Positions 15,054 to 54,462 are shown, counted from the stretch's first letter. The stretch is DNA of 64,000 nucleotides from Saccharolobus islandicus REY15A (GCF_000189555.1 NC_017276.1), one strand, 5' to 3'. Notes: generated by a model not told the origin, from the sequence alone. Program-made: numbers and translations.

Positions 15054-15844
15054 GACAAGAGAGTTTAAAAATTCCTATAAATGATTATACTTTAGATGAT
15101 AGGTAAAAACAAAATTGATGAGGAAGAGAGAAGGAGAAGAGAAGAAGTTAAAAGGTTAGTAATACTCTTAGCAATGTTAAGATAAAGGTTTTTTAAACTC
15201 AAATAATAATAATAAATATCATTATGTCAGTATTCTTCAGAACTAGGGATAGACCTCTACGTCCTGGAGATCCATATCCATTAGGTTCAAATTGGATAGA
15301 AGATGAGGATGGAGTAAATTTTTCCTTATTCTCAGAGAATGCAGAAAAAGTTGAATTACTCCTTTATTCACAAACAAATCAAAAGTATCCAAAGGAGATA
15401 ATAGAGGTTAAAAACAGAACGGGAGATCTTTGGCATATATTAGTCCCAGGGCTGAGACCCGGGCAACTTTACGCATACAAGGTTTATGGTCCGTATAAAC
15501 CGGCGTTAGGATTGAGATTTAATCCTAATAAGGTTTTAACTTAATTAGGGGTTAAGGGGGCGAAAGTCCCCTTCCGTAAGGTAGGGGATGAATAGCCCCC
15601 TTATAGAAACCTTTTTATTGCAAAAAATAGATAATTCTTAGGCCTCGGCTGTAAGAGCTGGGCCGTACCCTTGGGACTGGGGGAACTTACGCCTGTGGAG
15701 AGCAACCCTCCGTAACCCCTCTTCCACACGGGGCATTACAGAACGGTTCCGTTCGATGGAACCTCCGCTGTGGGTGAAGGGGGATCGAGGTTGCTCTGAG
15801 AAGCAGGAAATCCCCATCGTGAGGTGGAGATGCCCTGTCCGTAA

Positions 15845-17065
15845 CGGTAGACCCAAAATCACCTCCTTAAAAATAAATCTATAGTATAAATAAGCGTTTC
15901 AATTACATTAAATGTAAAATTCTCTGGATTGAATAAATCAGGAAATAAAAGAATTAATAATAATCTAAACTCCTCTCTCCCCACCTCCCCCTTGAATATG
16001 GTATATAAGGAGTAGAGTACAAGGGCCAGCACGAAGATCAACGTGCGGAAAACAAACTTAGTAGAACTAGTAAATGGAAGAAAAGCCTTAATGTTCCTAT
16101 AAGAGGTCTCTATGGGACCTCTTACCTTATTGTACAAATCCAACACTTCCCTCTTGGATAGGTCTAGGTTAGTAGCCCTAGCGAAGTAAACAAGACTCTT
16201 CTTCTTTCTCCCCACTTTTTCCTTGCTGTACACGAGAAGCCTGAACTTGACCTGCTCATCCCTCCTACGCCTCTTACTATTAGTTGTGTAATCCCCGTCA
16301 AACTCCTCGTACACCTTCACGTCCCCAACCGGAACAGCAATTATGTACTTAAACTGTGAAATGAAGTTGAGCACGTCAACAGTATAGAAACCAGCGTCAA
16401 GAGTTATCAACCTTATCTTGAATCCCATTGCCATTACTTGTTCAACAAGAGCCTTCACTATCTCGTCCTTAGTCATACCGTTCACTTGCGGAATAAAGGC
16501 AAGTAAAAGCACTTTCCCCTTATACTTGGTTGTTGCAGTTGCGTAGTTCCACGAGTTTCCTTTTTCAGAGCTCCCGAGCCCTTTCACTGGTTTCCCATAC
16601 CACGTCTTGGTTGTCCAGTCTATTGAGAGATCTATCTCATTCACTCCCTTTAATATCTCCAAGGATATTTTCCTAGCTCTTTCCAATAGCTTTTCAGTCA
16701 CTTCCATCCCTTGTTTATCTACGTAATTCCTCACGGTCTGTGGGGATACGTCATACGCTCTGGACTTGTTCTCTACTGAATCGTTCCACAAACACGCGGA
16801 GATGAGAGTTTTCGCTACCTCCTCTACCTTTTCCCCTTGGAAGTTCAACATGGAAAGTAATTTATATCCTATTTGTTGAATATTATTTTGGTGAGGGAGA
16901 CTTGGTGTTACCATCTTCCTATGTCACGTGGTAATACTCCATCTCCCTCACCTTAAACCCTTTCTTCAATTGAATTCTTTATACTCTTATAAATTTCTTT
17001 ATCTTTTATAAATTCGATATTATCCTACCAGAAATATTTTTTCTAATATGATTTTGGGTCTACCG
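15845..17065 (-). mobile_element. ISH3-family IS (ISC1225/ISC1200-like), 1221 bp
   Basis: 17-bp TIRs CGGTAGACCCAAAATCA; GTAA TSD at 15841-15844 and 17066-17069. Confidence 0.92.
15859..16914 (-). CDS. ISH3-family DDE transposase, intact
   Basis: 351 aa; IDWT, TLDAGF and IETSYR catalytic motifs. Confidence 0.92.
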   Translation of the reverse strand: MVTPSLPHQNNIQQIGYKLLSMLNFQGEKVEEVAKTLISACLWNDSVENKSRAYDVSPQTVRNYVDKQGMEVTEKLLERARKISLEILKGVNEIDLSIDWTTKTWYGKPVKGLGSSEKGNSWNYATATTKYKGKVLLLAFIPQVNGMTKDEIVKALVEQVMAMGFKIRLITLDAGFYTVDVLNFISQFKYIIAVPVGDVKVYEEFDGDYTTNSKRRRRDEQVKFRLLVYSKEKVGRKKKSLVYFARATNLDLSKREVLDLYNKVRGPIETSYRNIKAFLPFTSSTKFVFRTLIFVLALVLYSLYTIFKGEVGREEFRLLLILLFPDLFNPENFTFNVIETLIYTIDLFLRR

Positions 17066-18922
17066 GTAAGGGCGGGGTAGTTCACTAGACCCTTACGCCA
17101 AAGCCATAAATGGTAATGTGATTTGGAACGATGGAGTATTTGGTTATAAGATAGGAGACCAAAATCAAGATTTAAGCTATGACGAAAGGGATTCCAGCGA
17201 ATATGTACCTAAAAGTGTTGTGATTAACCCATACTTTGAATGGGACGATGAGGATTTCATTAAGAGGAATAAGGTTCCATTAAAGGATACAGTAATTTAT
17301 GAAGTTCACGTAAAAGGATTTACAAAACTTAGATTGGATTTGCCAGAAAACATAAGGGGATCTTATGAAGGTTTAGCCTCAGAACAAATGATTAGCTATC
17401 TCAAAGATTTAGGGATTACTACTGTAGAATTAATGCCGGTTTTTCACTTCATTGATCAAAGATTTCTGATAGATAAGGGGCTAACAAATTACTGGGGATA
17501 TGACCCAATAAACTTCTTCTCCCCGGAATGTAGATATTCCAGTAGCGGCTGTTTAGGAGAACAAGTATTCAGTTTCAAGAAAATGGTAAACGAATTGCAT
17601 AATGCAGGAATCGAGGTTATAATTGATGTAGTTTATAATCATACTGCTGAGGGAAATCATTTAGGACCAACGTTAAGTTTCAGAGGTATTGATAATATAG
17701 CATATTATATGCTCCAACCAGACAATAAAAGATATTATTTAGACTTTACCGGAACTGGTAACACGTTAAATCTTAGCCATCCAAGAGTTATCCAGATGGT
17801 CCTAGATAGCTTAAGATATTGGGTTACGGATATGCACGTAGATGGTTTTAGATTTGACTTAGCAGCCGCTTTAGCTAGGGAATTGTACAGCGTTAATATG
17901 TTAAATACGTTCTTCATTGCATTACAGCAAGATCCAATATTGTCACGAGTAAAACTAATAGCTGAACCGTGGGATGTAGGACAAGGAGGATATCAAGTTG
18001 GGAATTTCCCACATCAATGGGCAGAATGGAATGGAAAATATAGGGATTCTATAAGGAGATTTTGGAGAGGAGAAGCGTTACCCTATAGCGAGATTGCTAA
18101 CAGGCTATTAGGTTCACCAGACATCTACTTAGGTAATAATAAAACGCCATTTGCCAGTATAAACTACGTAACTTCGCACGATGGTTTCACATTAGAAGAT
18201 TTAGTTAGTTATAATCAAAAACACAATGAGGCGAATGGATTTAACAATCAAGATGGAATGAACGAGAACTACAGTTGGAATTGTGGTGCAGAAGGAACTA
18301 TAAATGACCAAAACGTAATTATGTGCAGAGAGAAACAGAAAAGGAACTTCATGATAACGTTACTTATTAGCCAAGGAACTCCCATGATATTAGGAGGAGA
18401 TGAGTTAAGTAGGACACAAAGAGGAAATAATAACGCGTTTTGCCAAGACAATGAGATAACTTGGTTTGATTGGAATTTAGATGAGAGAAAATCAAAATTT
18501 TTAGAGTTTGTTAAAAAAATGATCCAATTTTATAAAGCGCATCCGGTATTCAGAAGGGAAAGATATTTTCAAGGAAAGAAATTATTCGGCATGCCATTAA
18601 AAGATGTAACATTTTACACTCCAGACGGTAAGGAGGTTGATGAGAAAACGTGGAATTCCCCAACGCAAACTGTTATCTTCGTGTTAGAGGGGAGCGTAAT
18701 GGATGAGATTAACATCTACGGAGAGAGAATTGCAGATGATTCATTCTTAATAATACTTAACGCAAATCCCAATAACGTAAAAGTGAAGTTTCAAAAAGGT
18801 AAATGGGAACTAGTTGTTTGTTCTTATTTAAGAGAGATAAAACCAGAAGAAAGAATTGTAGAAGGCGAGAAGGAATTAGAAATTGAGGGAAGAACTGCAT
18901 TAGTTTATAGGAGGATAGAACT

Positions 18923-21109
18923 ATGATAACAGGCACATATAGGCTGCAACTAAATAATGGATTCACTTTTTATGATGTAATAGAAAATTTGGATTACTTT
19001 AAGGAATTAGGAGTATCACACCTATACCTATCTCCAATACTTAAGGCTAGACCAAGGAGTACTCACGGTTACGATGTAGTAGATCATAGTGAAATTAATG
19101 AGGAATTAGGAGGAGAAGAGGGATATTTTAGACTAGTTAAGGAGGCTAAGAGTAGAGGTTTAGGAATTATACAAGATATAGTGCCAAATCACATGGCAGT
19201 ACATCATACTAATTGGAGGCTTATGGATCTGTTAAAGAGTTGGAAGAATAGTAAATATTATAACTATTTTGATCACTATGATGAAGATAAAATTGTCCTT
19301 CCAATTCTTGAGGACGAGTTAGATATCATTATAGATAAGGAATTGATAAAAGTACAGAAGGACAAAATAGAGTATAGAGGACTTATATTACCGATAAACG
19401 ATGAAGGAGTTGAGTTCTTGAAAAGAATTAATTGCTTTGACAATTTATGTTTAAAGAAAGAGGACATAAAGAGATTACTATTAATGCAATATTATCAGCT
19501 AACTTACTGGAAGAAAGGTTATCCAAATTATAGGAGATTTTTCGCAGTAAATGATTTGATAGCTGTTAGGGTAGAATTGGATGAAGTATTTAGAGAGTCC
19601 CATGAGATAATTGGCAAGCTACTTGTTGACGGTTTAAGAATTGACCACATAGATGGACTATATGACCCTAAAGAGTATTTGGATAAGCTAAGACAGTTAG
19701 TAGGAAATAACAAGATAATATACGTAGAGAAGATATTGTCAATCAACGAGAAATTAAGAGATGATTGGAAAGTAGATGGTACTACTGGATATGATTTCTT
19801 GAACTACGTTAATATGCTATTAGTAGATGGAAATAGTGAAGAGGAGTTAACTGAGTTTTATGAGAGTTTCATTGGAAGAGAAATCAATATAGATGAGTTG
19901 ATAACGCAAAGTAAAAGATTAGTCGCAAATCAGTTGTTTAAAGGCGACATTGAAAGGTTAAGCAAGTTACTAAACGTCGATTATGAATATCTGGTAGATT
20001 TTCTAGCATGTATAAAAAAGTATAGGACATATTTACCATATGAGGATATTAGCACGATAAAGCAATGCGATAAGGAGGGAAGGTTAAGGGATGAAAGGGG
20101 AATCATGAGACTCCAACAATACATGCCAGCAATCTTCGCTAAGGGCTATGAGGATACTACCCTCTTCATCTACAATAGGTTAATCTCACTAAACGAGGTG
20201 GGGAGTGACCTAAGAAGATTCAGTATAAGCATTGAAGACTTTCATAACTTTAACCTAAGCAGAGTAAATAGCATATCAATGAATACTCTTTCCACTCATG
20301 ATACTAAATTCAGTGAAGACGTTAGAGCTAGAATATCAGTACTATCTGAGATACCAAAGGAGTGGGAGGAGAGGGTAGTATATTGGCATGATTTGTTAAA
20401 ACCAAATATTGATAAAAACGATGAGTATAGATTTTATCAAACACTTGTGGGAAGTTATGAGGGATTTGACAATAAGGAGAGAATTAAGAACCACATCATT
20501 AAGGTCATAAGAGAAGCTAAGGTACATACAACATGGGAAAATCCAAATTCAGAGTATGAAAATAAAGTTTTGGACTTCATAGATGGTGCATTTGAGAGCA
20601 GTAGTTTTAGGAATGATTTTGAAAATTTTGAAAAGAGAATAGTTTATTTCGGTTATATGAAATCATTAGTTGCAACGACACTTAAGTTCCTTTCGCCAGG
20701 CATACCAGATATTTATCAAGGAACTGAAGTTTGGAGATTCTTACTTACAGACCCAGATAACAGAATGCCGGTGAATTTCAAGAAACTAAGGGAATTATTA
20801 AATAGTTTGACTGAAAAGAACTTAGAACTTTCAGATCCAAGAGTCAAAATGTTGTATGTTAAGAAACTGCTACAGCTTAGGAGAGAGTACTTACTAAACG
20901 ATTATAAACCATTACCCTTTGGCTTCCAAAGGGGAAAAGTAACTGTTCTTTTCTCACCAATAGTAACTAGGGAGATTAAAGAGAAGATTAATATAAGGCA
21001 AAAAAGCGTGGATTGGATCAGAAATGAGGAAATTAGTAGTGGAGAGTACAATTTGAGTGAGTTAATTGGGGAGCATAAAGTTGTTATATTAACTGAAAAA
21101 AGTGGTTAA
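18923..21109 (+). CDS. treY: Maltooligosyltrehalose synthase (GH13)
   Basis: TYRLQ, STHGYDV, DIVPNHM, GLRIDHIDG, STHDTK; ATG overlaps the treX stop. Confidence 0.97.
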   Translation: MITGTYRLQLNNGFTFYDVIENLDYFKELGVSHLYLSPILKARPRSTHGYDVVDHSEINEELGGEEGYFRLVKEAKSRGLGIIQDIVPNHMAVHHTNWRLMDLLKSWKNSKYYNYFDHYDEDKIVLPILEDELDIIIDKELIKVQKDKIEYRGLILPINDEGVEFLKRINCFDNLCLKKEDIKRLLLMQYYQLTYWKKGYPNYRRFFAVNDLIAVRVELDEVFRESHEIIGKLLVDGLRIDHIDGLYDPKEYLDKLRQLVGNNKIIYVEKILSINEKLRDDWKVDGTTGYDFLNYVNMLLVDGNSEEELTEFYESFIGREINIDELITQSKRLVANQLFKGDIERLSKLLNVDYEYLVDFLACIKKYRTYLPYEDISTIKQCDKEGRLRDERGIMRLQQYMPAIFAKGYEDTTLFIYNRLISLNEVGSDLRRFSISIEDFHNFNLSRVNSISMNTLSTHDTKFSEDVRARISVLSEIPKEWEERVVYWHDLLKPNIDKNDEYRFYQTLVGSYEGFDNKERIKNHIIKVIREAKVHTTWENPNSEYENKVLDFIDGAFESSSFRNDFENFEKRIVYFGYMKSLVATTLKFLSPGIPDIYQGTEVWRFLLTDPDNRMPVNFKKLRELLNSLTEKNLELSDPRVKMLYVKKLLQLRREYLLNDYKPLPFGFQRGKVTVLFSPIVTREIKEKINIRQKSVDWIRNEEISSGEYNLSELIGEHKVVILTEKSG

Positions 21110-24132: not shown

Positions 24133-24341
24133 ATGATAATGTATAACTTTAAGTATATAGTGTTTTCCACTGTTTAGTTAAATCTTTCAATTTCTTTAGA
24201 TATTGAACTCATTAAATTTTTCTGGAATTCAGAATCTATCGTTGTATTAAAGATAAGTTTTACATATCTAGATAAAAATTGAATCTATCCATAAAGCAGT
24301 TTTCCACAAAACTCTTTTACCCCAATTAGATCCTTTAGATT

Positions 24342-24977: not shown

Positions 24978-25129
24978 AAATATTTAGATCATATTATTAG
25001 CGATTATTCGAAAGTTTTCTCCTAATGTATGTTGAATACTCAATAGAACATAAATATTTTAGTGAAAAATATTGCAAAATTCTTTGATTAGAATTAATAG
25101 CTACATTTCTACAAACAATATAGGAGGTT

Positions 25130-25548
25130 CTTATTCAATATCAGTGCTAAGCTTAGGCATAGGATTCACCAATGGAGTGTTGTTAAATTCGTGGAAATGT
25201 TAAAGGCTCAAGCAATAGACCTTGTTGAGTTTTCTGAGGCTTACACTTCCTCCATTAATCCCCTTAGATGATAAGAAGTTGAAGAAGGGTAAGCAGTTCA
25301 ATTAGATGGTAGTCAAGGTTTTTAACCCCTACTTGATGACGGACATTGCTCACGAGAGTGGGGGTATTAAAGTATTCGAGGTAACTGCTAGATATTTGGA
25401 GAGTGATGAAGTTTTGTTAGAAAGGGATTCAATTGCTCCCCTTAATCTTGTAAAGAAGGTGGATGGGAGGGTAGTCGTGTTTCCCTCGACTAGCCCCAAG
25501 GAATTAAGAGTGAAGGTTTATTATCCCTTAAGGGGGCGTTCTATATAG
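25130..25548 (+). pseudogene. tnpB: Degenerate TnpB-related C-terminal fragment
   Basis: HRIHQWSVVKF...EFSEAYTSSINP, an internal stop, then LERDSIAPLNL (RuvC-III-like). Confidence 0.55.
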
Positions 25549-25655
25549 GTGCTCGTGGTGGAATTAGAAGTAATTAAAAGTAAGGAGAAGTTACGCCACG
25601 GGTGAATACCTATTCATAGTTTAGTTTATATACTATTATTTCATAGTATATCTTA

Positions 25656-25943
25656 ATGAAGTTACAAGTTAATGGTAATTACATTTACATAACACTTTGG
25701 GATAAACAAGCAAAGAAGCCTAGGAGATTTTATCTTGGGAGAAAAGAGGATTTTAAAAAATTGGAAGAATTGTTTCGAGTAGCTAGAGAATATAGAATAA
25801 CTAAGCAAGAAATTACTGATTATTTAGAATATTATTTTGACAAGAGGATAAATCTAACTAAGATAGAATATGTCATTCTCTCCTTGAGTCTGGGTGTAGA
25901 GCTTTGGAAATTGAATGGAAATATAAGAATGCGTTTAGAATAG
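25656..25943 (+). CDS. Small putative DNA-binding protein, upstream partner of a nucleotidyltransferase
   Basis: YIYITLWDKQAKKPRRFYLGR beta-sheet motif; overlaps the next ORF. Confidence 0.65.
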   Translation: MKLQVNGNYIYITLWDKQAKKPRRFYLGRKEDFKKLEELFRVAREYRITKQEITDYLEYYFDKRINLTKIEYVILSLSLGVELWKLNGNIRMRLE

Positions 25944-26452
25944 CAATTAAAGAGATAAGAAGGTTTTATCCAGAATTTGCTATAATAGGAAGATTTGCAA
26001 GAAACTTTTACGCTAATCCTGAAACTACCCTCGATATAGATTTTATAGCGAATTTAGATGATGTCGAAAGATTGGCAGAATTCATAGAACATATATCATC
26101 TCATTATGAAATATTTCCTAATGACGTAGGACATTGGCAATATAAGATAATTATTAAAGGTGTAAGGGTTGATCTTGTAAAACCACCTCAATATAAGTTC
26201 GATGACGAGGTAATATCGAGGAGAAGAATAGTAAGAATTGAAGGAGTGGGCGAGGTTCCAATATTATCTCCGGAAGATTTAGTAACTCTTTATGTAGTAG
26301 CGTCTATAAATAGGGGAGTTAAAGATCTGATTAAGGCTAAAGATATAATTATCTATTCTTTAGCAAGACACGACTTTAATGAAGATTATTTCCTGAGGAA
26401 ATGTGAAGAAAATAGCGTAAAGGCGTTATGTTTGACTCTCCTCTCTAACTAA
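25904..26452 (+). CDS. Nucleotidyltransferase (AbiEii/DUF6036-like)
   Basis: IIGRFA...Y..PETTLDIDF, VDLV, LSPEDLV motifs. Confidence 0.75.
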   Translation: MEIEWKYKNAFRIAIKEIRRFYPEFAIIGRFARNFYANPETTLDIDFIANLDDVERLAEFIEHISSHYEIFPNDVGHWQYKIIIKGVRVDLVKPPQYKFDDEVISRRRIVRIEGVGEVPILSPEDLVTLYVVASINRGVKDLIKAKDIIIYSLARHDFNEDYFLRKCEENSVKALCLTLLSN

Positions 26453-26865
26453 TTACGGACTTACATTACATTTAAACTGCTGACGAGATTATGGTATAGT
26501 CACTGAGCTACAAATTAATTAAGCTAACTAGACTTCATAAAGTGAAGCTATTAAAATTGATACTCTTATATACGTTTGGAAGATTAGGAAAACAATTTAC
26601 AGCTTAACGGTTAGAATATGAGATATCTATCAAATTTTATCTTTTAGCTACGTTAAACTTATTCTTAGTTATTCGGTTTGGAATTTAAGAAACTTAATAT
26701 CATGGCATCTGAGAAAATTAAAGTATTTAGTAGGATATTTCGATTCTTAAATCATAAAATGATTAAAGTATTTTTCCTAGTCCAAGAAACATATTATATC
26801 TCATTGACTATACTACCAACTTCCTCATGAGTCACTTATTTTTACCCTAAAATTAAACTGTAACT

Positions 26866-29823: not shown

Positions 29824-31113
29824 GTTGCAAATAAAGGGGGTTAAGGGGGCGGAAAGCCTCGCCAGCGGGGATGGATAGCCCACTTATATTTAAATACTTC
29901 TTTGCCAATTTTCTGTCGATGGCTAGAAGGGTTAAAGCGATCAGAGCTAGTGTTTCTATGAAGATCGCTCTATCTGAACCCCTCCTAGTCCTCGTTAATA
30001 ACTATGTAAAGGCACTCCGTTTCACCCTATTTTGGTTAAAGGAAAATGTCCCGAACCCAGACGAGAAGGGAGTGCTAGGAAAAGTCCACGAGGAGTTGTA
30101 TGAGAAGTTAAGGGAGGAGTATAATCTACCATCAAAGGTTGCCGAGGATTGTTATAGGGATGCCCTCTCAGTGTACAAGGGATGGTATAATAATCCTAGA
30201 AGAGGGCGTTTTCCTAGAGTATACAAACCCACTGTATGGCTAACTCCTAAGGCTAGCTATAATGTGGACTTTGAAGCAATGACTGTTAGGATTGCAAGTG
30301 TTGGTGAACTTCAAATTCTAGGTTATCCGCGAAATTTGAAGGAATACATGAGTTGGAGGATGAAGGAGGCTAGGTTAGTGGTTAAGGATGGGAAGGCTTT
30401 TCTAAAAGTGGTTTTTGAGAAACCGTTGGAGAATGTTGAGCCAAAGGAAAGTGTTGCTGTTGATATTAATATGAGTGAGATTGTTGTAGGAAAGGATGAT
30501 ATTAACTACGTTAGGATCTCAACTCGTTTGCATGAGGTTCATCATTGGAAGTCTTTAGCTGAAAGCCTACAAAAGAAGTATCCTAGAAGGTGGGGGAGAA
30601 TAAGAGGATCTTGTATAGGATTCGTTTTTTCAATCAAAGGGCTAGGAGGATTTTGCTAGGAAGGTTGGGAGGTGGGTTGTTGAAATTGCTGGGGATTTTG
30701 GTGCTAATGTTGTTAAGTTGGAGAGTCTCAAGAATCTTGTTAAGAATGTTGATAGACTGCCAAGAGAGTTTAGGGATAAATTCTACTTGATGCAGTATCG
30801 TAGGATTCAATATTGGATTGTTTGGCAGGCTAAGAAGCATGGTATTCTAGTTGAGTTTGTTAACCCTAGTTATTCTTCTGTTTCGTGTCCTAAGTGTGGT
30901 AAAAGGATGGAAGAAAAAGGATATCGTTGGTTTAGGTGTTCATGTGGTTATGAGAATGATAGGGATGTTATTGCAGTTATGAATTTAAATAGGAGGGGTC
31001 TCTGACCCTCTCGTCTGCCCACCATATGAGAGATGTAGTCCCGAATCGATGGTGGGAACGATGATCCCTCTGGAAGGGAAACCATCGCCCTTTCAGGGCG
31101 GTGAGAAAGTCAG
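29824..31113 (+). mobile_element. IS200/IS605-family tnpB-only element, 1290 bp
   Basis: Follows TTGAT; left-end GGGGGCGGAAAG...GGATAGCCC hairpin; right end GGGCGGTGAGAAAGTCAG. Confidence 0.85.
29919..31005 (+). pseudogene. tnpB: TnpB, frameshifted near 30590-30650
   Basis: VAVDIN; later [10 protein letters not shown]...[14 protein letters not shown] in another frame. Confidence 0.88.
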
Positions 31114-31323: not shown

Positions 31324-31659
31324 TTAATTTTTGGGTCTAATCATTGGAATTATAAGTATACTTAAGCCTATTGCGATTATGAATGGCCATAAGTTAGCGT
31401 ACCATGGTGGGGGAACATGTATAGTAGGTGACGGGCCATAATAAAGCCCTTCTGGCGATCCTTCATATGGTTGTGCTATATATGTTGGATGGCCGATGGA
31501 ATAGAGCCATAAACCTATTCCCGCAAGGGCTATTGATAAAAATATGGTCGATAGGCTTCTTTTATTTGGTTTTACCCTTCCAAAATCCGGTGAGAAATAA
31601 AGAGTTAAGAAAGCCACGATTATTCCGGCAACGAAAATTAGAAGTGAAAGGAATTCCAT
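31324..31659 (-). CDS. C124-like membrane protein, intact (candidate immunity)
   Basis: GIGLWLYSI and PPPWYANLWP+TM, matching recalled SSV1 C124 GIWLKSI and PPWYANLWP. Confidence 0.78.
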   Translation of the reverse strand: MEFLSLLIFVAGIIVAFLTLYFSPDFGRVKPNKRSLSTIFLSIALAGIGLWLYSIGHPTYIAQPYEGSPEGLYYGPSPTIHVPPPWYANLWPFIIAIGLSILIIPMIRPKN

Positions 31660-32716: not shown

Positions 32717-33472
32717 CTACTTTCAAAAGCGTTCACTTAGCCCTAATACCGCAACTTGAGGAGAGATTGAGTAAAATTGGAGACGTTAAAGTAATGAATG
32801 AAGTTAAAAAGCTTAAGTCGGCCCTACCAAATAACGTAGTTCTAGTTACAATGGATAAAAACCTGGCTTCAAACATTTCGTTAAACTTGAAAACAATAAC
32901 GCTAGAGAGTTACGAATAAACAATACGATACGGGTGAGTTCTTACATTGCTTAAGCTATTACCCTCAATACAGTTTCAATAAGGGTTTTAGAAAGGTCTT
33001 ATACCTGGAATTTGAGGGAAAAGACGTAGGTAAGATCAGTTATAACACTGAGGATTTACTAACAGTAAACGTGGAGACGTTAGATAGTGAACTACCCCGC
33101 CCTTACGGACAGGGCATCTCCACCTCACGATGGGGATTTCCTGCTTCTCAGAGCAACCTCGATCCCCCTTCACCCACAGCGGAGGTTCCATCGAACGGAA
33201 CCGTTCTGTAATGCCCCGTGTGGAAGAGGGGTTACGGAGGGTTGCTCTCCACAGGCGTAAGTTCCCCCAGTCCCAAGGGTACGGCCCAGCTCTTACAGCC
33301 GAGGCCTAAGAATTATCTATTTTTTGCAATAAAAAGGTTTCTATAAGGGGGCTATTCATCCCCTACCTTACGGAAGGGGACTTTCGCCCCCTTAACCCCT
33401 AATTAAGTTAAATACAATTACGCCAAAGTTTTAGAGGCTAAAAAGCATCATAAAACCCTCTTCATGAACTAG
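32713..33472 (+). pseudogene. Hypothetical gene, frameshifted near 32915 and interrupted by SMN1
   Basis: Frame VETLD-I-KYNYAK is restored on removing 33087-33407. Confidence 0.5.
33087..33407 (-). mobile_element. SMN1-type MITE, intact, 321 bp
   Basis: Minus strand: TTTAA target (33408-33412), CTTAATTAGGGG start, TAGTTCAC end. Confidence 0.95.
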
Positions 33473-34844: not shown

Positions 34845-35753
34845 TCATTTTATTATGTGAGAAGCTATAATTTCTACCCCTTCCTCTTCAAGCTTCTTCT
34901 TTACCTTTTTGTCTACATAGTTTGCTACAAGGAATATTTTTATCTTCTTATCCTTATACTTAGTATAGAACAACTTTTTCCTTATGATAATTTGATCGTA
35001 AGCCCCTTTGTCTGCTAAATTCTTTATTTCAAATACGTAAACGTAATCATTGGTTTCGTAAAAGTCAACCTCAAACACCTTGCCTTTCTCTATCACTCCC
35101 TCTTCATCTTTTATCATACCATGTACTACTCTCTTAGGATCAACTCCGTGTAGCTCTAAAGCCTTTTTATAAAGTTTTAGCATTGTCCTTTCCATTCCTT
35201 TTCCCGCCCTATTAGTGAAACTTCCCACTTCTACTGAAAGTTTCATAACGGCTCTTTGTAATTTGCGTACTGCCTTCTGCAGACCTTCGATTGCCTCTCC
35301 TTGCTTTTTGACAGCTTCTTGAAGTGATGTTATTGCTTCCGTATGCTTATTCACCGTCTCTTGTAATGACTTTACTGCTTCTTGGAGAGATTGAATTGCC
35401 TCTCCTTGCTTTTTGACAGCTTCTTGAAGTGATGTTATTGCTTCCGTATGCTTATTCACCGTCTCTTGTAATGACTTTACTGCTTCTTGGAGAGATTGAA
35501 TTGCCTCTCCTTGCTTTTTGACAGCTTCTTGAAGTGATGTTATTGCTTCCGTATGCTTATTCACCGTGTTCTGTAACGAAGATATTGCTTCTCCTTGTCT
35601 CTTAACTTCCTCTTGTAAGGCTTTTACGTTAGCAATCGTTTCTTCTAATTTCTTTATAACTATTTCATCCTTAAGCTTGCCATATATTTTATCAGCTAAG
35701 GCTGAAAGTAATTGTGGATTGTTAAGGATCTCATCGGCAATCTTTCCACTCAT
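34845..35753 (-). CDS. Coiled-coil heptad-repeat protein with C-terminal PD-(D/E)xK nuclease-like domain
   Basis: 35-aa repeats; EVDFYE...VFEIKN motif. Confidence 0.8.
   Translation of the reverse strand: MSGKIADEILNNPQLLSALADKIYGKLKDEIVIKKLEETIANVKALQEEVKRQGEAISSLQNTVNKHTEAITSLQEAVKKQGEAIQSLQEAVKSLQETVNKHTEAITSLQEAVKKQGEAIQSLQEAVKSLQETVNKHTEAITSLQEAVKKQGEAIEGLQKAVRKLQRAVMKLSVEVGSFTNRAGKGMERTMLKLYKKALELHGVDPKRVVHGMIKDEEGVIEKGKVFEVDFYETNDYVYVFEIKNLADKGAYDQIIIRKKLFYTKYKDKKIKIFLVANYVDKKVKKKLEEEGVEIIASHIIK
35291..35567. repeat. 105-bp in-frame tandem repeat, about 2.6 units
   Basis: Units start at 35291, 35396 and 35501. Confidence 0.95.
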
Positions 35754-36609: not shown

Positions 36610-37352
36610 AAAATGATATAGGGTTCAATATCAACTATAAAATGTTCAGAATATGGATGAATCAAGCTTAAAATGAATTATCAAAAGATAGGAGTTTACC
36701 CGTGCCGTAACTTCTCCTTACTTTTAATTACTTTCAATTCCGCCACGGCCACCCCTTAAGGGATCATAGAGTCTGACATTAAGATATAAATTTCCTTTCT
36801 AATATTCCAAACGTATATAAGTATGTCAGTTTAACGTCTTCTCTTTATGAAGATCCGTTAATCTAATTAATTTGTAGGTCAGTGATGGCAGTATGTATAA
36901 TTTGAGCAATTATATTCATTTAAAATTTAGTTTAAATTCCTCTGAAATATTTCTCTTTAATGTTTTATTTCATATAAAATTTAAAAAATTATAACATTCT
37001 CTCTTTTGCAATGAGTAAATTTTATCACAAATGTCAACTGAATTAATACTTTGTATGATTTATACTGGAGTAGCAAAATTATTGTTAACACTAATAATAT
37101 TGTGATAAACTACAAATAATACTTTCACGAATTAGCGTAATCTTTAGCGTAAAGAACTATAATCCATACATTTTTACATGAAAATAATTTTTGCCTCAAA
37201 AATGCCGCTATCAAATTTCCCAATGATGATATGTTTGCCTAAAGTTTCAAAATTTTATCAAATTTCATATATTACTACGATTTTTATACTCTGCTCGTTA
37301 GACAATTTCTTCAGGATTAAAAAAGTCTTCATTGTTATACTGATAAAAATCA

Positions 37353-43689: not shown

Positions 43690-44137
43690 GGGAGAAGACT
43701 ACCTTGAACAAGGTACATGACGTTCAACAAGACTATAATCAACAATCCTCTCACCCTATTGACCTTAGTGTCCCTAGCTAATATAGCAAAGTGGGACCTA
43801 CAATAAGAATTATAACTCTCGATAGCGTATTTCTTACTCGCAACACGATTATCAAGAACTTGATAAACAGAGTAATCATCAGTGTAATTAACCTCACTCT
43901 TAGGGAGAGAATTCCGGAGGAAGCGGAAAGTCTATCAATTCTTCAAAATCAATTAAGGAATTTTACTGCAAAATTTATTGCTCTTGGCGAGAGTTAGACT
44001 TACGTTAGGCACTGTCCTAAGAGGGAAAACTTTTGGATGTGGAACGCCTTAACTGATGGTACGCCTTTCTTCACTACTGGTAAAGTGGATTACTAATATT
44101 ACAAATTTATTTTTAAGAAGTAATTTTTGGGTCTACC
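43690..44137 (+). mobile_element. Degenerate ISH3-family remnant with right TIR
   Basis: IRIITLDS resembles IRLITLDA; end TTATTTTTAAGAAGTAATTTTTGGGTCTACC resembles the copy-1 right end. Confidence 0.7.
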
Positions 44138-44157
44138 ATGAGGGTGAGGTAATTCAC
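44138..44157 (+). mobile_element. IS200/IS605 right-end stub
   Basis: ATGAGGGTGAGGTAATTCAC aligns with SMN1 end GTAAGGGCGGGGTAGTTCAC. Confidence 0.6.
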
Positions 44158-45848: not shown

Positions 45849-45853
45849 AGGTT

Positions 45854-47401: not shown

Positions 47402-47588
47402 TGATAATAGGATGTAATTTCATGAAAATACTATAACTTATAAATGGTGGTGAAAAGACGATTTTTGAAAACATCTTTCAGATAGAAACATCGTACCATC
47501 TATATTAGGGCGGAGCCTATTTACATAAGAACCTTTCTATTATTATTTTTGATTTCTAGTATAATAAATTAATAAGTAAAAAGAAAAA

Positions 47589-49016
47589 TTATTTCTTCTT
47601 CCTCTGGTCAACAAACACTTGCAACTTGTAGCCTGTCCATATTGTATTTCCAGGCTTTACCCACTCTATCTCAACGTCATCTGGATTAATCCCAATCCTG
47701 CTCGCTAATATCTCTCTGGCTTGCTTATCGTAAGTAGAATTAACCTGTTCCCTCCTTGTCTCTATTCTAATCTTCAATTTATCCATACTATTATCGTAAA
47801 TAAAAATGTTAAACATTCCAGTAGTGTCTGGAATTTCATTCACAGCGTCCTCAACGTAAATTGGCAATAATAGTTTCCCTTTAACGAAGAACATCCACTC
47901 AACCCTACCTGGTATTGGCTCAGCAAATCTCATGTGAGTTATACCATACTTAGGATCCGGATCGGTCAGGAAGTCATTCTTAACGTAATCTCCTAAACTA
48001 TAGCGTATTAAAGGCATGGTAAAGTGATTTAACAAGGTCGCTATCAGTTCACCTCTTTCTCCCCCAGATACTGGTTCATCAGTCTTAGGGTCTACAATAT
48101 CAAATATCTCCATGTCCTCCCAAACTACTAATTGTCCTTCTAAGCTTGGAACTTCAATAGCCATATGTCCATCAGTGGTTCCCCAAACACTTATAGCCAA
48201 TTCAGCATTTGGATGAACCTTGAATAATTTCTTTTTAGTGTTTTCAGCAGCTGCACCACCGTGAAGTAGCAAAACCTTGAAGGGAGTTTCCCAACCCTCA
48301 ATTTTAGCCTCCTCTCCTACTAATCTATGTAGCCAAGGAGTTGTGGCAAATACGTCAACTTTCCATAGTTTGAAGATCAAGTTGTGTCTATTCTTCCATG
48401 AGAAGTAAGTCTCACCACCTCCAGCTATGACAGTTGCCCCACATCTCCACATTGCGGTCTCAACAACCGGAGGCCCCCAACTATAAAAGCCACTCATGTT
48501 TAGGTAGTTCGCGTAAACCTTAGTTGGCTTAACTTCAGCAAAAGTCCACAAGTACCTTGCCTGGGCTTCTTGGAAGTAGTCCATTTCCAAAGCCCCCCAT
48601 CCTTGGAAAGTAGGTAATCCAGTTGAGCCAGAAGTCGCTCCAACAAATCTTATGTGATTAGCCAATTCTGGATGGAAAATTGTACCAAATGGAGGATTTT
48701 GCTGTAGGTCTTTCCTAATTTCATCTTTTCTCAATATCGGTATTTTAGCGATATCCCTCCAGTCCTTTATCATGTCTGGTTCGAAGTTTTTAGACTTCCA
48801 AAACCTTCTATAGAACTCGATGTTTTCCCATGCCCACCTTATAATCCTTCTTAGTCTAAACGTCTTTAACTTATCGATTTCCTCTCTTTTCATTGTCATT
48901 ATCTTCTTATTCCATAACACTTCAGATGGATTTGGGGGATAATCAGTTCTAATAAAACCTTGTTCTCGCAATTCCCTATGAATTGCATCGTATTCGTTTT
49001 TAACTGAAGACATCAA
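47589..49016 (-). CDS. Phenylacetate-CoA ligase-like adenylate-forming enzyme
   Basis: [30 protein letters not shown]. Confidence 0.88.
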
Positions 49017-49189
49017 TCTTCTAATGTTTAAAGAGTTTAAAAAATTATAAATTCGTCTTCAAGGGAAACTCACTTCGAGTAGTCATAGCTACAAGTTCGA
49101 TTTTTAATTTTGTTAAAAACAGTCAAAAAAGCCCTCTATAGTTGTTTCAACCTAAATTAATTTAAAGATTGATAATAAACCTTTGATTA

Positions 49190-49732
49190 ATGGAGCCAAA
49201 AATTGTTAGGTTTAATCTTGGAAAAGAGTACATAATTTTAACTTCAGCTTTATATCCAGAAGGAATAATTAGAGTTAACCAAATTTGTAGTATTTTCGTT
49301 GATAAAAGTTATTGTAGTGGTAACCCTTGGGGAGATGTAATTAACTGGTGTCCCTCTAAATCTGCCATAATGTTCATGACTGCTGCAAAGAATTACACTT
49401 TTAAAGAAACTGATTGGGGTAAATTTTTCATCAGTGCTGGAATTGGGAGAAGCGGTGAGGATGCAGGTTGTACTATTAATATTGGGGTGTTTGTTGATAA
49501 AGGGTTAAACATTAATGGATTAGTTGACTTAATAAGAACAGTAACAGAGGCTAAGGCTGGAGCTTTAAGGGATTTGGGATATAAGTTTACGGGTACTGTA
49601 AGTGATGCAATTGCAGTTGGCTCTTTACCTGGAAACGAATATTTCATAGGCCCAGGTACTGAATTAGGCAAAAAGATAGCCTACGATATTAGAAACACTA
49701 TTGTTGAATTATTATTTAAAGGAGACGATTAG
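49190..49732 (+). CDS. cbiZ: Adenosylcobinamide amidohydrolase
   Basis: GCTINI, TVTEAKA, FTGTVSDAIAV. Confidence 0.8.
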   Translation: MEPKIVRFNLGKEYIILTSALYPEGIIRVNQICSIFVDKSYCSGNPWGDVINWCPSKSAIMFMTAAKNYTFKETDWGKFFISAGIGRSGEDAGCTINIGVFVDKGLNINGLVDLIRTVTEAKAGALRDLGYKFTGTVSDAIAVGSLPGNEYFIGPGTELGKKIAYDIRNTIVELLFKGDD

Positions 49733-49868
49733 GTTTTTATATTTCGTTGAAGAGGAATGAGTGGGCAAAACTTGAGAGGTGAAGAGTGGTCTCAGGGCTG
49801 ATTTGGTGATGGTCTATTAAAAATTCAAAATAAGTGACTTTATAAGTTACTAATTATCATTTTTACAT

Positions 49869-51176
49869 ATGGAGAAGACTATTGAGAGATTAATCGATAC
49901 GGCAAAGTGGACTTCAATACATTCGCTAATGTTTGCCTCACTTGCAATAGGTTACTTCATGTGGGGAGTAATTGCTTCTATTGCTCCCTTAATTTATCCT
50001 AATATAAATAGTGTATTATTCCTACTAACCCCAACATTTGCAACACTAGCAGGTAACTTAATACTTTCATTATTTTCAGATAAGAAATTGGGTAGGAAGA
50101 CTACCTTCTTCATTACAATGTCACTATATTCTGTTGGAACCATATTACTAGTTTTAGCGTCAGTCTTAGCTGGTTTCAGTACAGATAATCTAGCAAAATT
50201 TCCTTCATTAATTCTAATAATCTTAGGAATAGTTTTAGGAATATTTGGAGTTGAGGGTGAAGTCCCAGTAATGCTATCATATACTGCAGAGATGATGCCT
50301 CTCAAATACAGAGATATGATGTTAGTATTGGCTCCAAATTTCGACAATATTGGAGCAATGGTAGCTGCTCTAGTTGGGTATTTAACGTATAGCCTTTCAA
50401 ACTCTTTCATAATAGAACTTTTAGCCCTTTCCGTTGTCGCAATATTGGGCATTGTTACGGCAGTGATAATAAGACTATTGTTACCAGAATCTGTAAGATG
50501 GCTGGCAACTAAAGGAGATATAAATAAGGCAAAAATTGAGGCTAGCAAGGTTGTAAAAGACGGTACAACAGAAGTAAAAGAAGTTAATGTGAACAAAAAG
50601 CTAAGTTTAGGTTCTAGATACGCATTTCTAGCTATAATAGGACTTTCTCAATATTTAACCTATGGCTTAATGGCATTTGTGGTCGCAGACTATTATTTTT
50701 CCTCGTCACAAACCCCTTTCATTATCTTCATAGCAAATTTAGGGGCTTCAATTTCTGGTTTTATAGCAGCGTATATTGCGAACAAGATAAGGACCAGAAT
50801 CTTCGCGTTAATATCATATGTGGGAGGTAGTCTTAGTATGATTCCAATTCTATACCTAACCACTAACTTCAACTTCGCAATGTTTTACTCATTACTAATT
50901 GTCAATATGTTGTTTAGCGAATTTGGCTGGGCAATTAGGACGATATACGAACCTGTATTAATGCCAAAGAAGTTGAGGGCGTTCATGATAGGACTAATTA
51001 GGCTCGTTCCAATTACCGCATATGCGATCTCAACTTATGTTACTCAATCCTTTAATTTAACTAATTACATATTGTATAACACGATACTGTGGCTAATTGG
51101 AGGTATTGCTACAATAATATGGTACTTTAAAGGTATAGATACGAATTACGTATCCTTAGAGGAGGTTGAACGATAA
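49869..51176 (+). CDS. MFS transporter
   Basis: SDKKLGRK loop, LPESVRW, 12 TM. Confidence 0.9.
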   Translation: MEKTIERLIDTAKWTSIHSLMFASLAIGYFMWGVIASIAPLIYPNINSVLFLLTPTFATLAGNLILSLFSDKKLGRKTTFFITMSLYSVGTILLVLASVLAGFSTDNLAKFPSLILIILGIVLGIFGVEGEVPVMLSYTAEMMPLKYRDMMLVLAPNFDNIGAMVAALVGYLTYSLSNSFIIELLALSVVAILGIVTAVIIRLLLPESVRWLATKGDINKAKIEASKVVKDGTTEVKEVNVNKKLSLGSRYAFLAIIGLSQYLTYGLMAFVVADYYFSSSQTPFIIFIANLGASISGFIAAYIANKIRTRIFALISYVGGSLSMIPILYLTTNFNFAMFYSLLIVNMLFSEFGWAIRTIYEPVLMPKKLRAFMIGLIRLVPITAYAISTYVTQSFNLTNYILYNTILWLIGGIATIIWYFKGIDTNYVSLEEVER

Positions 51177-51654
51177 TATTTTCCCAAAGACCTAACCATA
51201 ACTAAACAAATTAATCCAATACTGAAGAAAATAAACTCAAATGTCAATATTCCGAGGTACTTCTCGAATGGTACTAGAAAGTCCACGAAACCCATTGGAA
51301 AAGCCACTAAGATCAATCTTTTTCTCCCCGTAATAACGCTTAATACTGAGAGATATCCCCATGATGAATGAATTAGAAGTGACGAGAACCTTTCAAGTAT
51401 GCTGAGCCCGATGAGTGGTAGTGCTTGTGTAACTGGATATTCGAGTTGTGAGGGAGTAGATAGTATTAACGGAAAGAAGTAATAGGCTATGTATATAAAG
51501 AGCGTGGGTATTGATATTAATACTCCGTTTTCCCACATTGCTAAAGACACTCCATAACCCCAACCATTCTTTAACTTCCCCAATAGTGCAAAGACGTAGG
51601 CTAGACCGACTTCAAATATGGAAGTTTGCAACCCATAATGTGAACTACCACGCC

Positions 51655-52860
51655 CTAACGGACGTGGCTTCCTGCTTCACAGCCGAGGCTTGCCAAAGGT
51701 AGAGGTCTCAGCTCCACAGGCACTAAGGGTCGTTCCGACCCCGATCTACTCAGAATATTAAGAGAAGCATTATAATCACGGTCTACAGTCCAACCGCAGG
51801 AAGGACAGACAAACACACGATCAGCCAAAGCCAAGTCCTTCTTAACGTAACCACACCTAGCACAAATCATTGAAGTAAAAGCAGGATTAACAAAACGAAT
51901 CTCCTTACCATACTTCCCAACTTGATACTCCATAATACTCCTAAGCTCATGAAAAGCAACATCGTGTAACCTCATCCTCAGCCTTCTGAGAGACTTACCA
52001 ACAATTTGCTTAACATGAATATCCTCCATTACGAGAACATCATAATGCCCAGCAAAATACTTCCCCAGTTTCATGTACATATCCATCCTCAGGTTCTTCA
52101 AGTGCTCATAAGCCCTTGCAAGCTTAATCTTCGCCTTAAACCAGTTGTGTGACAAGAACTTCTTCCTTGAAAGAGCTTTATGAAGTCTCTTCATCTTGTT
52201 GAGTGCCTTCTCGTAAGGCCTCATGTTTGGCACGTATTCCCCGTCAGAGGTAGTGAGAAGTTTCTCTACACCAACGTCCACAGCAACAACTTTGTTTGTC
52301 TTGGGGAGTTGAGGATACACTTGATCCACAACGAAAGTGATGTACAATCTGCCTGAAGGTGCCAGCTTGACTACTACCCTCTCCACTTTTTCCAGTTGGA
52401 AATCCCTATGAACAACGACGTTGAAGATACCTAGGTTTGAAAGCTGAAGCGTCATTACCTTCTTCTTGTTCTTCTTGCTTTTCGTCCTTATTTCTCTCAC
52501 CTTCATGACTTTCCAACCTGACTGAGGGTAGACTAGTGAGTACCACTTGTGTGCTTTCTTTTCCTTGGGGAAGTGTGCTAACCCTTCGAAGAACCTCTGT
52601 CTAGCGTCGTAGAATCTGTCTGCGATCTGTTGTAGTGTTTGGGAATATAGATGTTGATATTGTTTATCCTGTTTTCTTAGATCGAGAGCTAGTTGTCTCA
52701 ACTCCGTCTTAGTGAGTCCTTTTCCGTCTCTCTCATGAAAATAGATGTCTGCCCAACGTAGGGTGTTGTACACTTCACACGCTAACCTCAATTGGGCTTT
52801 TAACGCCCTCAATGTTTGTTCGTCAGCGTAAGCTCTAAAGCGTAACCCTACGTCAGACAT
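51655..52860 (-). CDS. tnpB: TnpB RNA-guided nuclease, intact
   Basis: AVDVG, VMEDI, CARC..CPSC zinc finger, [10 protein letters not shown]. Confidence 0.93.
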
Positions 52861-52921
52861 TAATAGAATATTTGAAAAAGAATTATTTAAATATAAGGGG
52901 GCTATCCATCCACTCCCTCAC

Positions 52922-54209
52922 CGGTAGACCCAAAATCACCTCCTCAAAAATAAATCTATAGTGTAAATAAGCGTTTCAATTACATTAAATGTAAAATTCT
53001 CTGGATTGAATAAATCAGGAAATAAAAGAATTAATAATAATCTAAACTCCTCTCTCCCCACCTCCCCCTTGAATATGGTATATAAGGAGTAGAGTACAAG
53101 GGCCAGCACGAAGATCAACGTGCGGAAAACAAACTTAGTAGAACTAGTAAATGGAAGAAAAGCCTTAATGTTCCTATAAGAGGTCTCTATGGGACCTCTT
53201 ACCTTATTGTACAAATCCAACACTTCCCTCTTGGATAGGTCTAGGTTAGTAGCCCTAGCAAAATAAACAAGACTCTTCTTCTTTCTCCCCACTTTTTCCT
53301 TGCTGTACACGAGAAGCCTGAACTTGACCTGCTCATCCCTCCTATGCCTCTTACTATTAGTTGTGTAATCCCCGTCAAACTCCTCGTACACCTTCACGTC
53401 CCCAACCGGAACAGCAATTATGTACTTAAACTGTGAAATGAAGTTGAGCACTAGTAGTTATTGGAAATTCTTAGCTGATTCTTTTGCAGAATCAAGATGT
53501 TAGCAAGCTACGAACTTATTGGACTTACTAACGTCAACAGTATAGAAACCAGCGTTAAGAGTTATCAACCTTATCTTGAATCCCATTACTTGTTCAACAA
53601 GAGCCTTCACTATCTCGTCCTTAGTCATACCGTTCACTTGCGGCAAGTAAAATCACTTTCCCCTTATACTTGGTTGTTGCAGTTGCGTAGTTCCACGAGT
53701 TTCCTTTTTCAGAGCTCCCGAGCCCTTTCACTGGTTTCCCGTACCATGTCTTGGTTGTCCAGTCTATTGAAAGATCTATCTCATTCACTCCCTTTAATAT
53801 CTCCAAGGATATTTTCCTAGCTCTTTCCAATAGCTTTTCAGTAACTTCCATCCCTTGTTTCTCTACGTAATTCCTCACGGTCTGTGGGGATACGTCATAC
53901 GCTCTGGACTTGTTCTCTACTGAATCGTTCCACAAACACGCGGAGATGAGAGTTTTCGCTACCTCCTCTACCTTTTCCCCTTGGAAGTTTAGCATGGAAA
54001 GTAATTTATATCCTATTTGTTGAATGTTATTTTGGTGAGGGAGACTTGGTGTTACCATCTTGGTTATTCACGTGGTAATACGCCATCTCCCTCACCTTAA
54101 ACCCTTTCTTCAATTGAATTCTTTATACTCTTATAAATTTCTTTATCTTTTATAAATTCGATATTATCCTACCAGAAATATTTTTTCTAATATGATTTTG
54201 GGTCTACCG
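52922..54209 (-). mobile_element. ISH3-family IS, inactivated copy (1288 bp)
   Basis: Same 17-bp TIRs as copy 1; 6- and 8-bp deletions and an 81-bp insertion break the transposase. Confidence 0.92.
53451..53531. other. 81-bp foreign insertion inside the ISH3 transposase
   Basis: Absent from copy 1 (GAGCA|CGTCAAC); ends TAGTAG...TTACTA. Confidence 0.8.
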
Positions 54210-54462
54210 GTGAGGGAGGGGATGGATAGCCCCCTTTGAACCCCTTGTTAATATAAACCTAAAATTGCTAAACTATTAATTGATGCTAAATAACCTAAGG
54301 TAAAAATTGTACTAAAACCTTTAATACGATAGCTATGAAATAAGCTAGTGCAGAAAACATTAATACTTTGATAGACTTAACTAGCTTATATACGATTCCG
54401 AAAGAGAATACCATCACTATTATGGGAGTCAGGAAATATATTGGATCAAAGCTCATCTTCCA

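Follow-up and report, generated by a model that had tools for sequence, protein, structure and literature searches.

An ISH3-family insertion sequence of Sulfolobales with a strong preference for GC-rich palindromes at the ends of IS200/IS605-family elements

Several insertion sequences (ISs) are known to home to short palindromes or to the ends of other mobile elements. Those targeting repetitive extragenic palindromes (REPs) and bacterial interspersed mosaic elements (BIMEs), namely IS1397 and ISKpn1 of the IS3 family as well as ISPa11, ISPpu9 and ISPpu10 of the IS110 family, use palindromes which are related to IS200/IS605 ends via the TnpA-like RAYT proteins. IS4321/IS5075 insert in the terminal repeats of Tn21/Tn501 and the IS1111-attC group in hairpin-forming attC sites (IS110/IS1111 family). 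IS231A (IS4 family) has the target GGG-N5-CCC, found at its best in the terminal repeat of Tn4430, and IS10 (Tn10) the target NGCTNAGCN. To our knowledge, none of these precedents involves archaea, the ISH3 family or IS200/IS605 ends. Here, a stretch of 64,000 nucleotides from Saccharolobus islandicus REY15A, a model strain for genetics (GCF_000189555.1, NC_017276.1; in the following the window), was analysed, in which ISH3-family ISs lie in the ends of IS200/IS605-type elements. According to the favoured reading, to which we assign a probability of roughly 0.75, an ISC1225/ISSto14-type ISH3 element has a strong preference for a GC-rich imperfect palindrome of about 20 bp, which is read as sequence.

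Like the REP/BIME-targeting ISs, this element homes to short, abundant, GC-rich palindromes that serve as a safe landing site, the REP/BIME sites being intergenic, and the analogy drawn in a preliminary description of the window is apt. The REP/BIME-targeting ISs differ in being bacterial and in their transposase families; moreover, the palindromes used by the ISH3 element are the ends of intact mobile elements or of miniature inverted-repeat transposable elements (MITEs), and it is the palindrome spacer that is duplicated on insertion. That a mobile element may home to the ends of another has a precedent in IS4321/IS5075 and the IS1111-attC group, but these are DEDD-type and recombinase-like and insert in one orientation without duplication, whereas the ISH3 element is of the DDE type, duplicates 4-5 bp and is found in both orientations. 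IS231A and IS10 are DDE elements with a preference for a short symmetric consensus on duplex DNA, as is suggested for the ISH3 element, although their consensus is a different and shorter one, their duplication comprises 9-12 bp and they are bacterial. As the preliminary description had supposed, no account of the target preference was found in the open full-text literature; the early Sulfolobus IS papers in subscription journals lay outside this search, and a prior mention is possible. The novelty appears to lie in the target specificity, the IS family itself being known.

The transposase of the intact copy in the window (copy A) matched NCBIfam NF033541 (transpos_ISH3) with 302.8 bits compared to a cut-off of 225, as well as Pfam DUF4322 and DDE_Tnp_1. 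It is encoded once, as an exact match, on the REY15A chromosome (CP002425.1) and shows an identity of 75% to ISC1225 of S. solfataricus and of 82% to ISSto14 of S. tokodaii. The published description of the ISH3 family (PMC2266710) gives CRGT ends together with 4-5 bp direct repeats flanked by A and T, without naming a target preference. The element starts with CGGT at both ends, and its length of 1221 bp with one open reading frame (ORF) of 351 amino acids lies at the lower edge of the range of 1225-1500 bp with a single ORF. Duplications of 4-5 bp were determined as GTAA (copy A, locus w1), TCAC (L152), TAAC (three times, L138-140), TTTA (L014, L135), TAGA (L001), TAAA (L142), TTCA (L143), TATA (L154), TTGAT (L141) and TATCT (L136). 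Since all family features examined are present, the element is an ISC1225/ISSto14-type member of ISH3. ISC1225 and ISSto14 share the ends CGGTAGACCCAAAATC and the duplication of 4-5 bp with it, and those of their copies that were examined are found in the same type of target (a right-end hairpin for L135, a left-end-like sequence for L143); the REY15A element differs from them as a distinct sequence variant of 1221 bp. The hosts likewise carry the features of IS200/IS605 elements, i.e. TnpB with or without Y1 TnpA (OrfB_IS605 and Y1_Tnp beside the insertions L138-140, OrfB_IS605 at L152) and similar subterminal imperfect palindromes at both ends without terminal inverted repeats, and homologous ends were found at many loci.

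Copy A (15845-17065, minus strand) is intact, with its transposase ORF at 15859-16914 (minus strand) and terminal inverted repeats of 17 bp, CGGTAGACCCAAAATCA, on both sides. It is bordered by GTAA at 15841-15844 and GTAA at 17066-17069. Its host is SMN1, a MITE of 320 bp from S. islandicus mobilised by an ISC1733-type (IS200/IS605) transposase (PMC3718332). The left part of this SMN1 copy (15535-15844, plus strand) comprises the left-end hairpin CCCCTTCC-GTAA-GGTAGGGG at 15568-15587, the body, and finally the inner arm CCCTGTCC of the right-end hairpin with the loop GTAA, which is the left copy of the duplication. On the other side of copy A, the right GTAA is followed by the outer arm and tip GGGCGGGGTAGTTCACTA (17066-17087, plus strand). 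A second SMN1 copy at 33085-33412 (minus strand, loop GTAA at 33103-33106) is intact and serves as the empty-site reference. It matches the interrupted copy over 313 nt (33100-33412) with a reported identity of 100% and reads ...GATGCCCTGTCC GTAA GGGCGGGGTAGTTCACTA without interruption. Because of this match, the empty site CCCTGTCC-GTAA-GGGCGGGG and the 4-bp duplication can be seen directly: copy A entered the 4-nt loop of the SMN1 right-end hairpin, 8-10 nt from the right tip, and duplicated the loop, exactly as proposed in the preliminary description. SMN1 contains no ORF. A scan of the whole window with Rfam gave no family at the gathering threshold and hence no support for the suspicion that the structured SMN1 body is a known RNA.

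Copy B (52922-54209, minus strand, 1288 bp) is a pseudogene in the same orientation as copy A, from which it differs by an insertion of 81 bp at about 53449-53529, deletions of 6 and 8 bp and about 22 substitutions. The 81-bp insertion (ACTAGTAGTTATTGG...CTTATTGGACTTACTA) may represent a MITE about 79 bp long, accompanied by a 2-bp duplication (AC), a size resembling that of the Sulfolobus SM1 MITEs. The host is an ISC1316-like, tnpB-only element of about 1.3 kb (51640-52921, minus strand), which comprises a right-end tip, tnpB, a TATA box and a palindrome arm. Its tnpB (51655-52860, minus strand) matched Pfam OrfB_IS605 and Cas12f1-like_TNB and NCBIfam guided_TnpB (254.5 bits). The right-end hairpin CCACGCCC-TAAC-GGACGTGG at 51648-51667 is unoccupied and takes rank 7 in the target matrix described below. 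Copy B is flanked by ...GGGGGCTATCCATCCACTCCCTCAC and GTGAGGGAGGGGATGGATAGCCCCC... and occupies the centre of a near-perfect left-end palindrome of 26 nt, just upstream of the TATA box and the start of tnpB. The promoter-side arm of this palindrome is found at 52895-52921 and the outer part of the left end, as judged by comparison with the sister copy L152, at 54210-54252 (minus strand).

The first 26 nt beyond copy B (54210-54235) are a near-perfect complement of 52896-52921, and the two flanks, TCAC and GTGA, are mutually inverted. The position at the apex of the left-end hairpin next to GTGA, given in the preliminary description, was thus confirmed, although a direct duplication is absent. 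The state to be expected is seen at L152, a sister tnpB element in REY15A, which reads ...GGGGGCGAAAGACCCCTTCC-GTGA-[IS]-GTGA-GGGAGGGGATGGATAGCCCCC. Compared to L152, GCGAAAGACCCCTTCC-GTGA is replaced at copy B by GCTATCCATCCCCTCCC-TCAC, the exact complement of the opposite arm. The stretch GCGAAAGACCCCTTCCGTGA has been converted into this complement, whereby about 19 nt of left-end sequence and the duplication were overwritten, and flanking arms and IS ends together now form an inverted repeat of 63 nt (52895-52957 and 54174-54236). The comparison of the two sister elements suggests that the arms were homogenised by intramolecular gene conversion or by template switching between the inverted arms.

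A relic of about 42 nt at 44097-44138 (plus strand) represents the transposase-distal end (...TTTTTAAGAAGTAATTTTTGGGTCTACCA) of a related ISH3 element. It adjoins an IS200/IS605-type right-end tip, TGA-GGGTGAGG-TAATTCAC (44139-44157, plus strand), while the rest of the host is gone. This tip, TGAGGGTGAGGTAATTCAC, is homologous to the SMN1 right-end tip GTAAGGGCGGGGTAGTTCAC with the register shifted by 1 nt, so that the earlier placement of the relic end near 44137, within 1 nt of the register of copy A, holds. A further tip, GTAA-GGGCTGGG-TAGTTCAC-TAA (3410-3432, plus strand), begins exactly at the loop and stands alone, without inner arm, element body or IS; it may be what an old ISH3-associated deletion has left behind. 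In total, five right-end tips were found in the window, the intact ones at 33087 and 51640, those at copy A and the relic, and the solo tip.

For other genomes, a protein-guided scan, in which each species was represented by a single genome, yielded 10 loci (in Stygiolobus, Metallosphaera, Acidianus and another Sulfolobaceae genome), and scans for the terminal repeats gave 3 loci from a viral collection and at least 120 metagenome loci. Exact-protein look-ups yielded copies in finished genomes of S. islandicus (REY15A, L.S.2.15, Y.G.57.14, Y.N.15.51), S. solfataricus, S. shibatae and S. tokodaii. After near-identical flanks had been merged, at least 138 distinct flank clusters were obtained (118 before the later loci were added). 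In REY15A, all four copies and the one relic lie within IS200/IS605-type palindromes. The two copies beyond the window are L152, at the left end of the sister tnpB element with a clean TCAC duplication and in the orientation opposite to copy B, and L146, which has an SMN1 left-end arm on one side and a right-end tip on the other. Of the 19 copies examined in finished genomes, 14 lie with one or both flanks in an IS200/IS605-type end region.

In S. islandicus L.S.2.15, three copies occupy the loop GATGCCCCGTCC-GTTA-GGGCGGGG in three TnpA+TnpB elements, each at a chromosomal locus of its own, the occupied right end reading GATGCCCCGTCC-GTTA-GGGCGGGGTAGTTCAC. These composites are alike in position, duplication and orientation, as would be expected if a few ancient insertions had been multiplied by the continued transposition of an IS200/IS605 host carrying the ISH3 element in its hairpin. 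On single-stranded DNA the inverted repeats of the IS would bring the hairpin arms together, and flanking arms and IS ends indeed form long inverted repeats. However, the three copies show 0 differences over the 1213-bp IS compared to 10-17 single-nucleotide differences over about 1486 bp of adjoining host sequence, while joint copying predicts the opposite, with about 8-12 differences in the IS. Since the ISs are identical and the host copies have diverged, the three represent recent separate insertions, and the comparison gives no sign of joint transposition of the composites. Furthermore, insertions into the same loop show both orientations when different genomes are compared, the orientations of copy B and L152 in their sister elements are opposite, and host families, loops and outside flanks vary widely. 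Multiplication by the host is thus already largely refuted, and we give it next to no weight.

S. solfataricus contains two tandem ISC1225 copies in CTCCCTCC-TTTA-GGAGGGGG-TAGCTCAC with three copies of TTTA. This pair (L135; LT549890.1, 2682779-2686873; 156-2609 within the locus) is separated by TTTA and lies in one right-end hairpin; it arose either by a second insertion into the duplicated loop beside the first or by formation of an IS dimer. Across the clusters, three flank classes recurred: the left-end motif GGGGTTAAGGGGGCGGAAAG-CCTCGCCC-TTCA|, the right-end tips GTGAACTACCCCGCCC-TTAC| or CTGACYTCCTCCCCGCCC-TGAA|, and right-end inner arms such as ...GGAAGCCCCGTCC-GTCA| and ...AACCCTCGCCC-TTTA| (the bar marking the IS). 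As the DNA outside the right-end tips is unrelated, these flanks represent separate insertions. An uninterrupted paralog of the flank was present for 58 of the 138 clusters even within this small data set, which indicates that the targets are mostly repeated DNA. Overall, the preference of this lineage for the subterminal palindromes of IS200/IS605-family elements, claimed for end hairpins in the preliminary description from three cases, is strong and recurrent in REY15A, in L.S.2.15 and in dozens of independent flanks from other genomes and hot-spring metagenomes.

At L146, L069, L075 and L001, a left-end arm is joined to a right-end tip. An explanation of all such arrangements as deletions between two IS copies was discarded, as a natural mini-element (L021, position 3596) contradicts it. 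Because this uninterrupted mini-element has the same layout, L075 and perhaps L001 are plain insertions; L146 and L069 are ambiguous between a plain insertion and a deletion between two IS copies within one host. Very short elements consisting of a left-end motif, one hairpin and a right-end tip were observed at L021 (position 3596) and L012 (positions 767 and 3361, minus strand), for example GGGGGCGTAAAG-CCTCGCCC-TTCA-GGGCGAGG-AGGAAGTCAG, and constitute REP-like derivatives of IS200/IS605 ends in Sulfolobales. A CRISPR-like array with a repeat ending in ...GCTTATGTGCA was found beside a left-end-like motif at L014 (690-1750; IMGVR_UViG_3300027932_000001), about 1.2 kb from the ISH3 insertion with its clean TTTA duplication.

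From 118 flank clusters, the consensus C C Y C S C C C T was obtained at positions -12 to -4 (7.4 bits), with A at -1, and it is alike on both sides of the IS. The full target accordingly reads 5'-CCYCSCCC-(T)NNA-GGGSGRGG-3', the spacer of which becomes the duplication of 4-5 bp. A position weight matrix trained without the flanks from the window was scored over the 61,455 positions of the restored window. Herein, the occupied and the intact SMN1 right-end loop took ranks 1-2 and the copy B site rank 6, the intact loop being the top-scoring unoccupied target predicted in the window. Since the matrix was trained on outside loci, these ranks show that the insertions in the window are not placed by chance. 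All of the top ten positions lie in IS200/IS605-derived elements, among them the right and left ends of SMN1, sites in the SMN1 body, 51656 in the host of copy B and 31092. The latter, in third place among the predicted sites, belongs to a degenerate tnpB element (29830-31113, plus strand) with the unoccupied right-end hairpin CATCGCCC-TTTCA-GGGCGGTG at 31084-31104 and the tip GAGAAAGTCAG; a partial match at 31329-31341 was rejected as a chance match, as it lies within an ORF and its flanks are not target-like. In a leave-one-out calculation, 68% of the 138 clusters reached a half-site score of at least 6 bits, compared to 0.34% of the positions in the window. The orientation of the insertions is unbiased (16:12 at right-end tips, 6:7 at left-end arms), which fits a symmetric target.

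The motif is also used outside of IS200/IS605 ends. Another IS4/ISH3-like transposase gene is occupied at CTCCTC-GTTCTG-GAGGAG near its 3' end, and similar palindromes are occupied in the 5' part of tnpB ORFs. In the metagenome loci L073, L049, L102, L118 and L126, this IS4/ISH3-like gene (...WEIEELHRDVKALGLEDSSF...) is repeatedly interrupted at that site by the ISC1225-like IS, in two registers 3 nt apart. Moreover, the IS carries an internal half-site, CACCTCCCCCTTGA, which is occupied in the metagenome contig L023, giving a nested copy. In copy A this half-site (15979-15992, 14.5 bits) is located about 150 nt from the transposase-distal end and has no symmetric partner; it is kept in the copies of REY15A, L.S.2.15 (L138) and Stygiolobus (L001) and absent from ISC1225 and ISSto14. 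The idea that the target mimics a binding site of the IS itself was given up as a general explanation for these two reasons, the missing partner and the absence from ISC1225 and ISSto14.

These data also bear on the possibility that insertion is nearly random and that copies merely persist in harmless places such as mobile elements. Most of the retained copies do lie in mobile or repeated DNA, as reflected by the uninterrupted paralogs, and IS-rich regions tolerate insertions. Selection, however, cannot explain the precision to a single nucleotide: in SMN1 (about 330 bp) and its ISC1733-type relatives, all insertions fall within one of two 4-nt loops. Neither does it account for the recurrence of a consensus of nine positions in unrelated contexts, coding DNA included, or for the matrix ranks of the sites in the window. 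We therefore regard survivorship as a sole cause as very improbable.

A more serious question is whether the sequence or the hairpin is recognised. The preliminary description proposed that the hairpin structure is read by the transposase. In such a case the target would be a hairpin or cruciform in extruded form or, as for TnpA, a hairpin that has formed on single-stranded DNA at the replication fork, and the IS ends would be joined at the two stem-loop junctions. This would be in accordance with duplications that equal the loop (w1, L152, L138-140, L135, L014 and L075), with the use of both left-end and right-end hairpins despite their different sequences and with insertions in both orientations. 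The composition of the arms points in the other direction. Among the matches listed for the 138 clusters, the arm next to the IS contained at least five C in 96 clusters and at least five G in none, although hairpins of both kinds are structurally equivalent. In addition, a hairpin with the G-rich arm first (GGGGGCG-AAAG-YCCCC) is present in every left end at a distance of 11-13 nt from the hot spot, yet it was never used in the flanks examined.

Clean empty sites gave a similar picture. In 5 of 11 (L001, L136, L141, L142 and L143), no hairpin is centred on the duplication, and these non-folding sites show a ΔG of -1 to -5 kcal/mol with z of about 0. The two arms of L001 and L143 are C-rich and G-rich in agreement with the consensus, yet they are not complementary in register. 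Sites with only one arm exist as well and have clean duplications (L141 with TTGAT, L154 with TATA). Furthermore, Sulfolobales DNA is relaxed to positively supercoiled due to reverse gyrase, which disfavours cruciform extrusion, and duplex targets are the norm for strand transfer by DDE transposases. Taken together, a structure-specific targeting is considered unlikely, and the arm composition, the non-folding sites and the one-arm sites, together with the insertions outside of IS200/IS605 ends, speak against the proposal of the preliminary description on this point. That description had named two outcomes as speaking against it, a lack of enrichment in the flanks or a short linear GC-rich consensus sufficient to explain the sites. 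A flank preference was found, yet a GC-rich consensus of two half-sites explains the sites at least equally well. We favour a symmetric transposase complex that would read two inverted C-rich half-sites on duplex DNA, as the sequences of the flanks suggest; most sites resemble hairpins because the best matches to the motif in AT-rich genomes are the IS200/IS605 palindromes.

Site, consensus, duplication and the independent recurrence of the events can be read from the loci themselves. In the mechanism proposed to connect them, an ISH3-family DDE element with the ends CGGT...ACCG would make a staggered target cut of 4-5 bp, and the cuts would flank the 4-nt spacer of the palindrome and turn it into the target-site duplication. 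In the AT-rich Sulfolobales, the motif would occur almost only in the subterminal palindromes of the left and right ends of IS200/IS605-family elements, which include TnpA+TnpB elements, tnpB-only ISC1316-like elements, SMN1 MITEs and still shorter derivatives. As the motif would be nearly confined to these ends, the IS would accumulate there in either orientation. Occupied ends would later decay, as suggested by the homogenised arms at copy B, the mixed flanks of L146 and L069 and the solo tips at 44139 and 3410.

Several observations weigh against sequence reading or against the generality of the target. The other 6 of the 11 clean sites fold into stems of 8-9 bp with a 4-nt loop that is exactly the duplication, which a structure-guided targeting would predict likewise. 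Since arms that match one consensus are palindromic by construction, natural data cannot fully separate sequence from structure. The classification of the flanks is signature-based: strict signatures assign 45 of the 138 clusters to a left-end arm or a right-end tip, and a share of IS200/IS605 ends of about 60% is reached only by manual reading that includes inner arms. TnpB ORFs adjoin a minority of the metagenome flanks; an iterative search with hidden Markov models gave 13 TnpB ORF fragments in about 135 loci, and the ORFs beside the flanks are heterogeneous. TnpB adjacency was therefore dropped as a general test, as MITE-like or mini elements supply most of the target palindromes in the metagenomes. 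In draft genomes and metagenomes, many complete copies have no duplication and mismatched flanks, for which recombination between ISs and misassembly are indistinguishable. Finally, binding of TnpA to the palindromes of Sulfolobales is presumed by analogy with IS608 and ISDra2.

From the same two systems it is deduced that TnpA would cleave at fixed distances from the palindromes, with insertion 3' of a conserved tetra- or pentanucleotide. The insertion of the ISH3 element places 1.2 kb between the arms of the palindrome, and because the presumed TnpA-binding hairpin is split, the host element is putatively crippled; a subsequent loss of host mobility, as supposed in the preliminary description, is plausible, and of the present data only the L.S.2.15 composites, which give no sign of having been moved, bear on it. 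In left ends the IS is inserted upstream of the TATA box, and transcription of tnpB may therefore persist. A far-reaching version, related to the earlier proposal of a parasite of IS200/IS605 elements, would see the ISC1225/ISSto14 lineage as a dedicated transposon of transposons, which evolved to read the TnpA-binding hairpin by structure and sequence, perhaps on single-stranded DNA, inactivates IS200/IS605/TnpB elements by splitting it and then erodes them via recombination between ISs and homogenisation of the palindromes. We consider this version quite unlikely; if it were true, the lineage would shape the load of TnpB elements in Sulfolobales genomes.

Two further features of the window were observed. 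Three tandem copies of a 105-nt unit (identity of 83-100%) are present at 35256-35592 within the minus-strand ORF 34845-35753. Inverted repeats of 54-66 nt (79-86% complementary) form three pairs that connect 25548-26607 with 36688-36885, about 10-11 kb apart; they may represent intergenic regions that are paralogous, or they may mark the borders of a larger segment that was rearranged.

With the described preference, an archaeal DDE transposon gains a defined and predictable landing site of about 15 bits. Such sites are rare among transposons of this class, and this one is of use for annotation. Broken ends of SMN1, ISC1316 and ISC1733 as well as solo right-end tips become readable as footprints of the ISH3 element. 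Tool builders may also be interested in a DDE enzyme that strongly prefers palindromic targets at 75-80 °C. For the biology of the Sulfolobales, the finding describes how two transposon families interact, the functional ends of one serving the other as a safe haven, with likely effects on the elements carrying TnpB and ωRNA, namely a putative loss of mobility, deletions and the homogenisation of palindrome arms.

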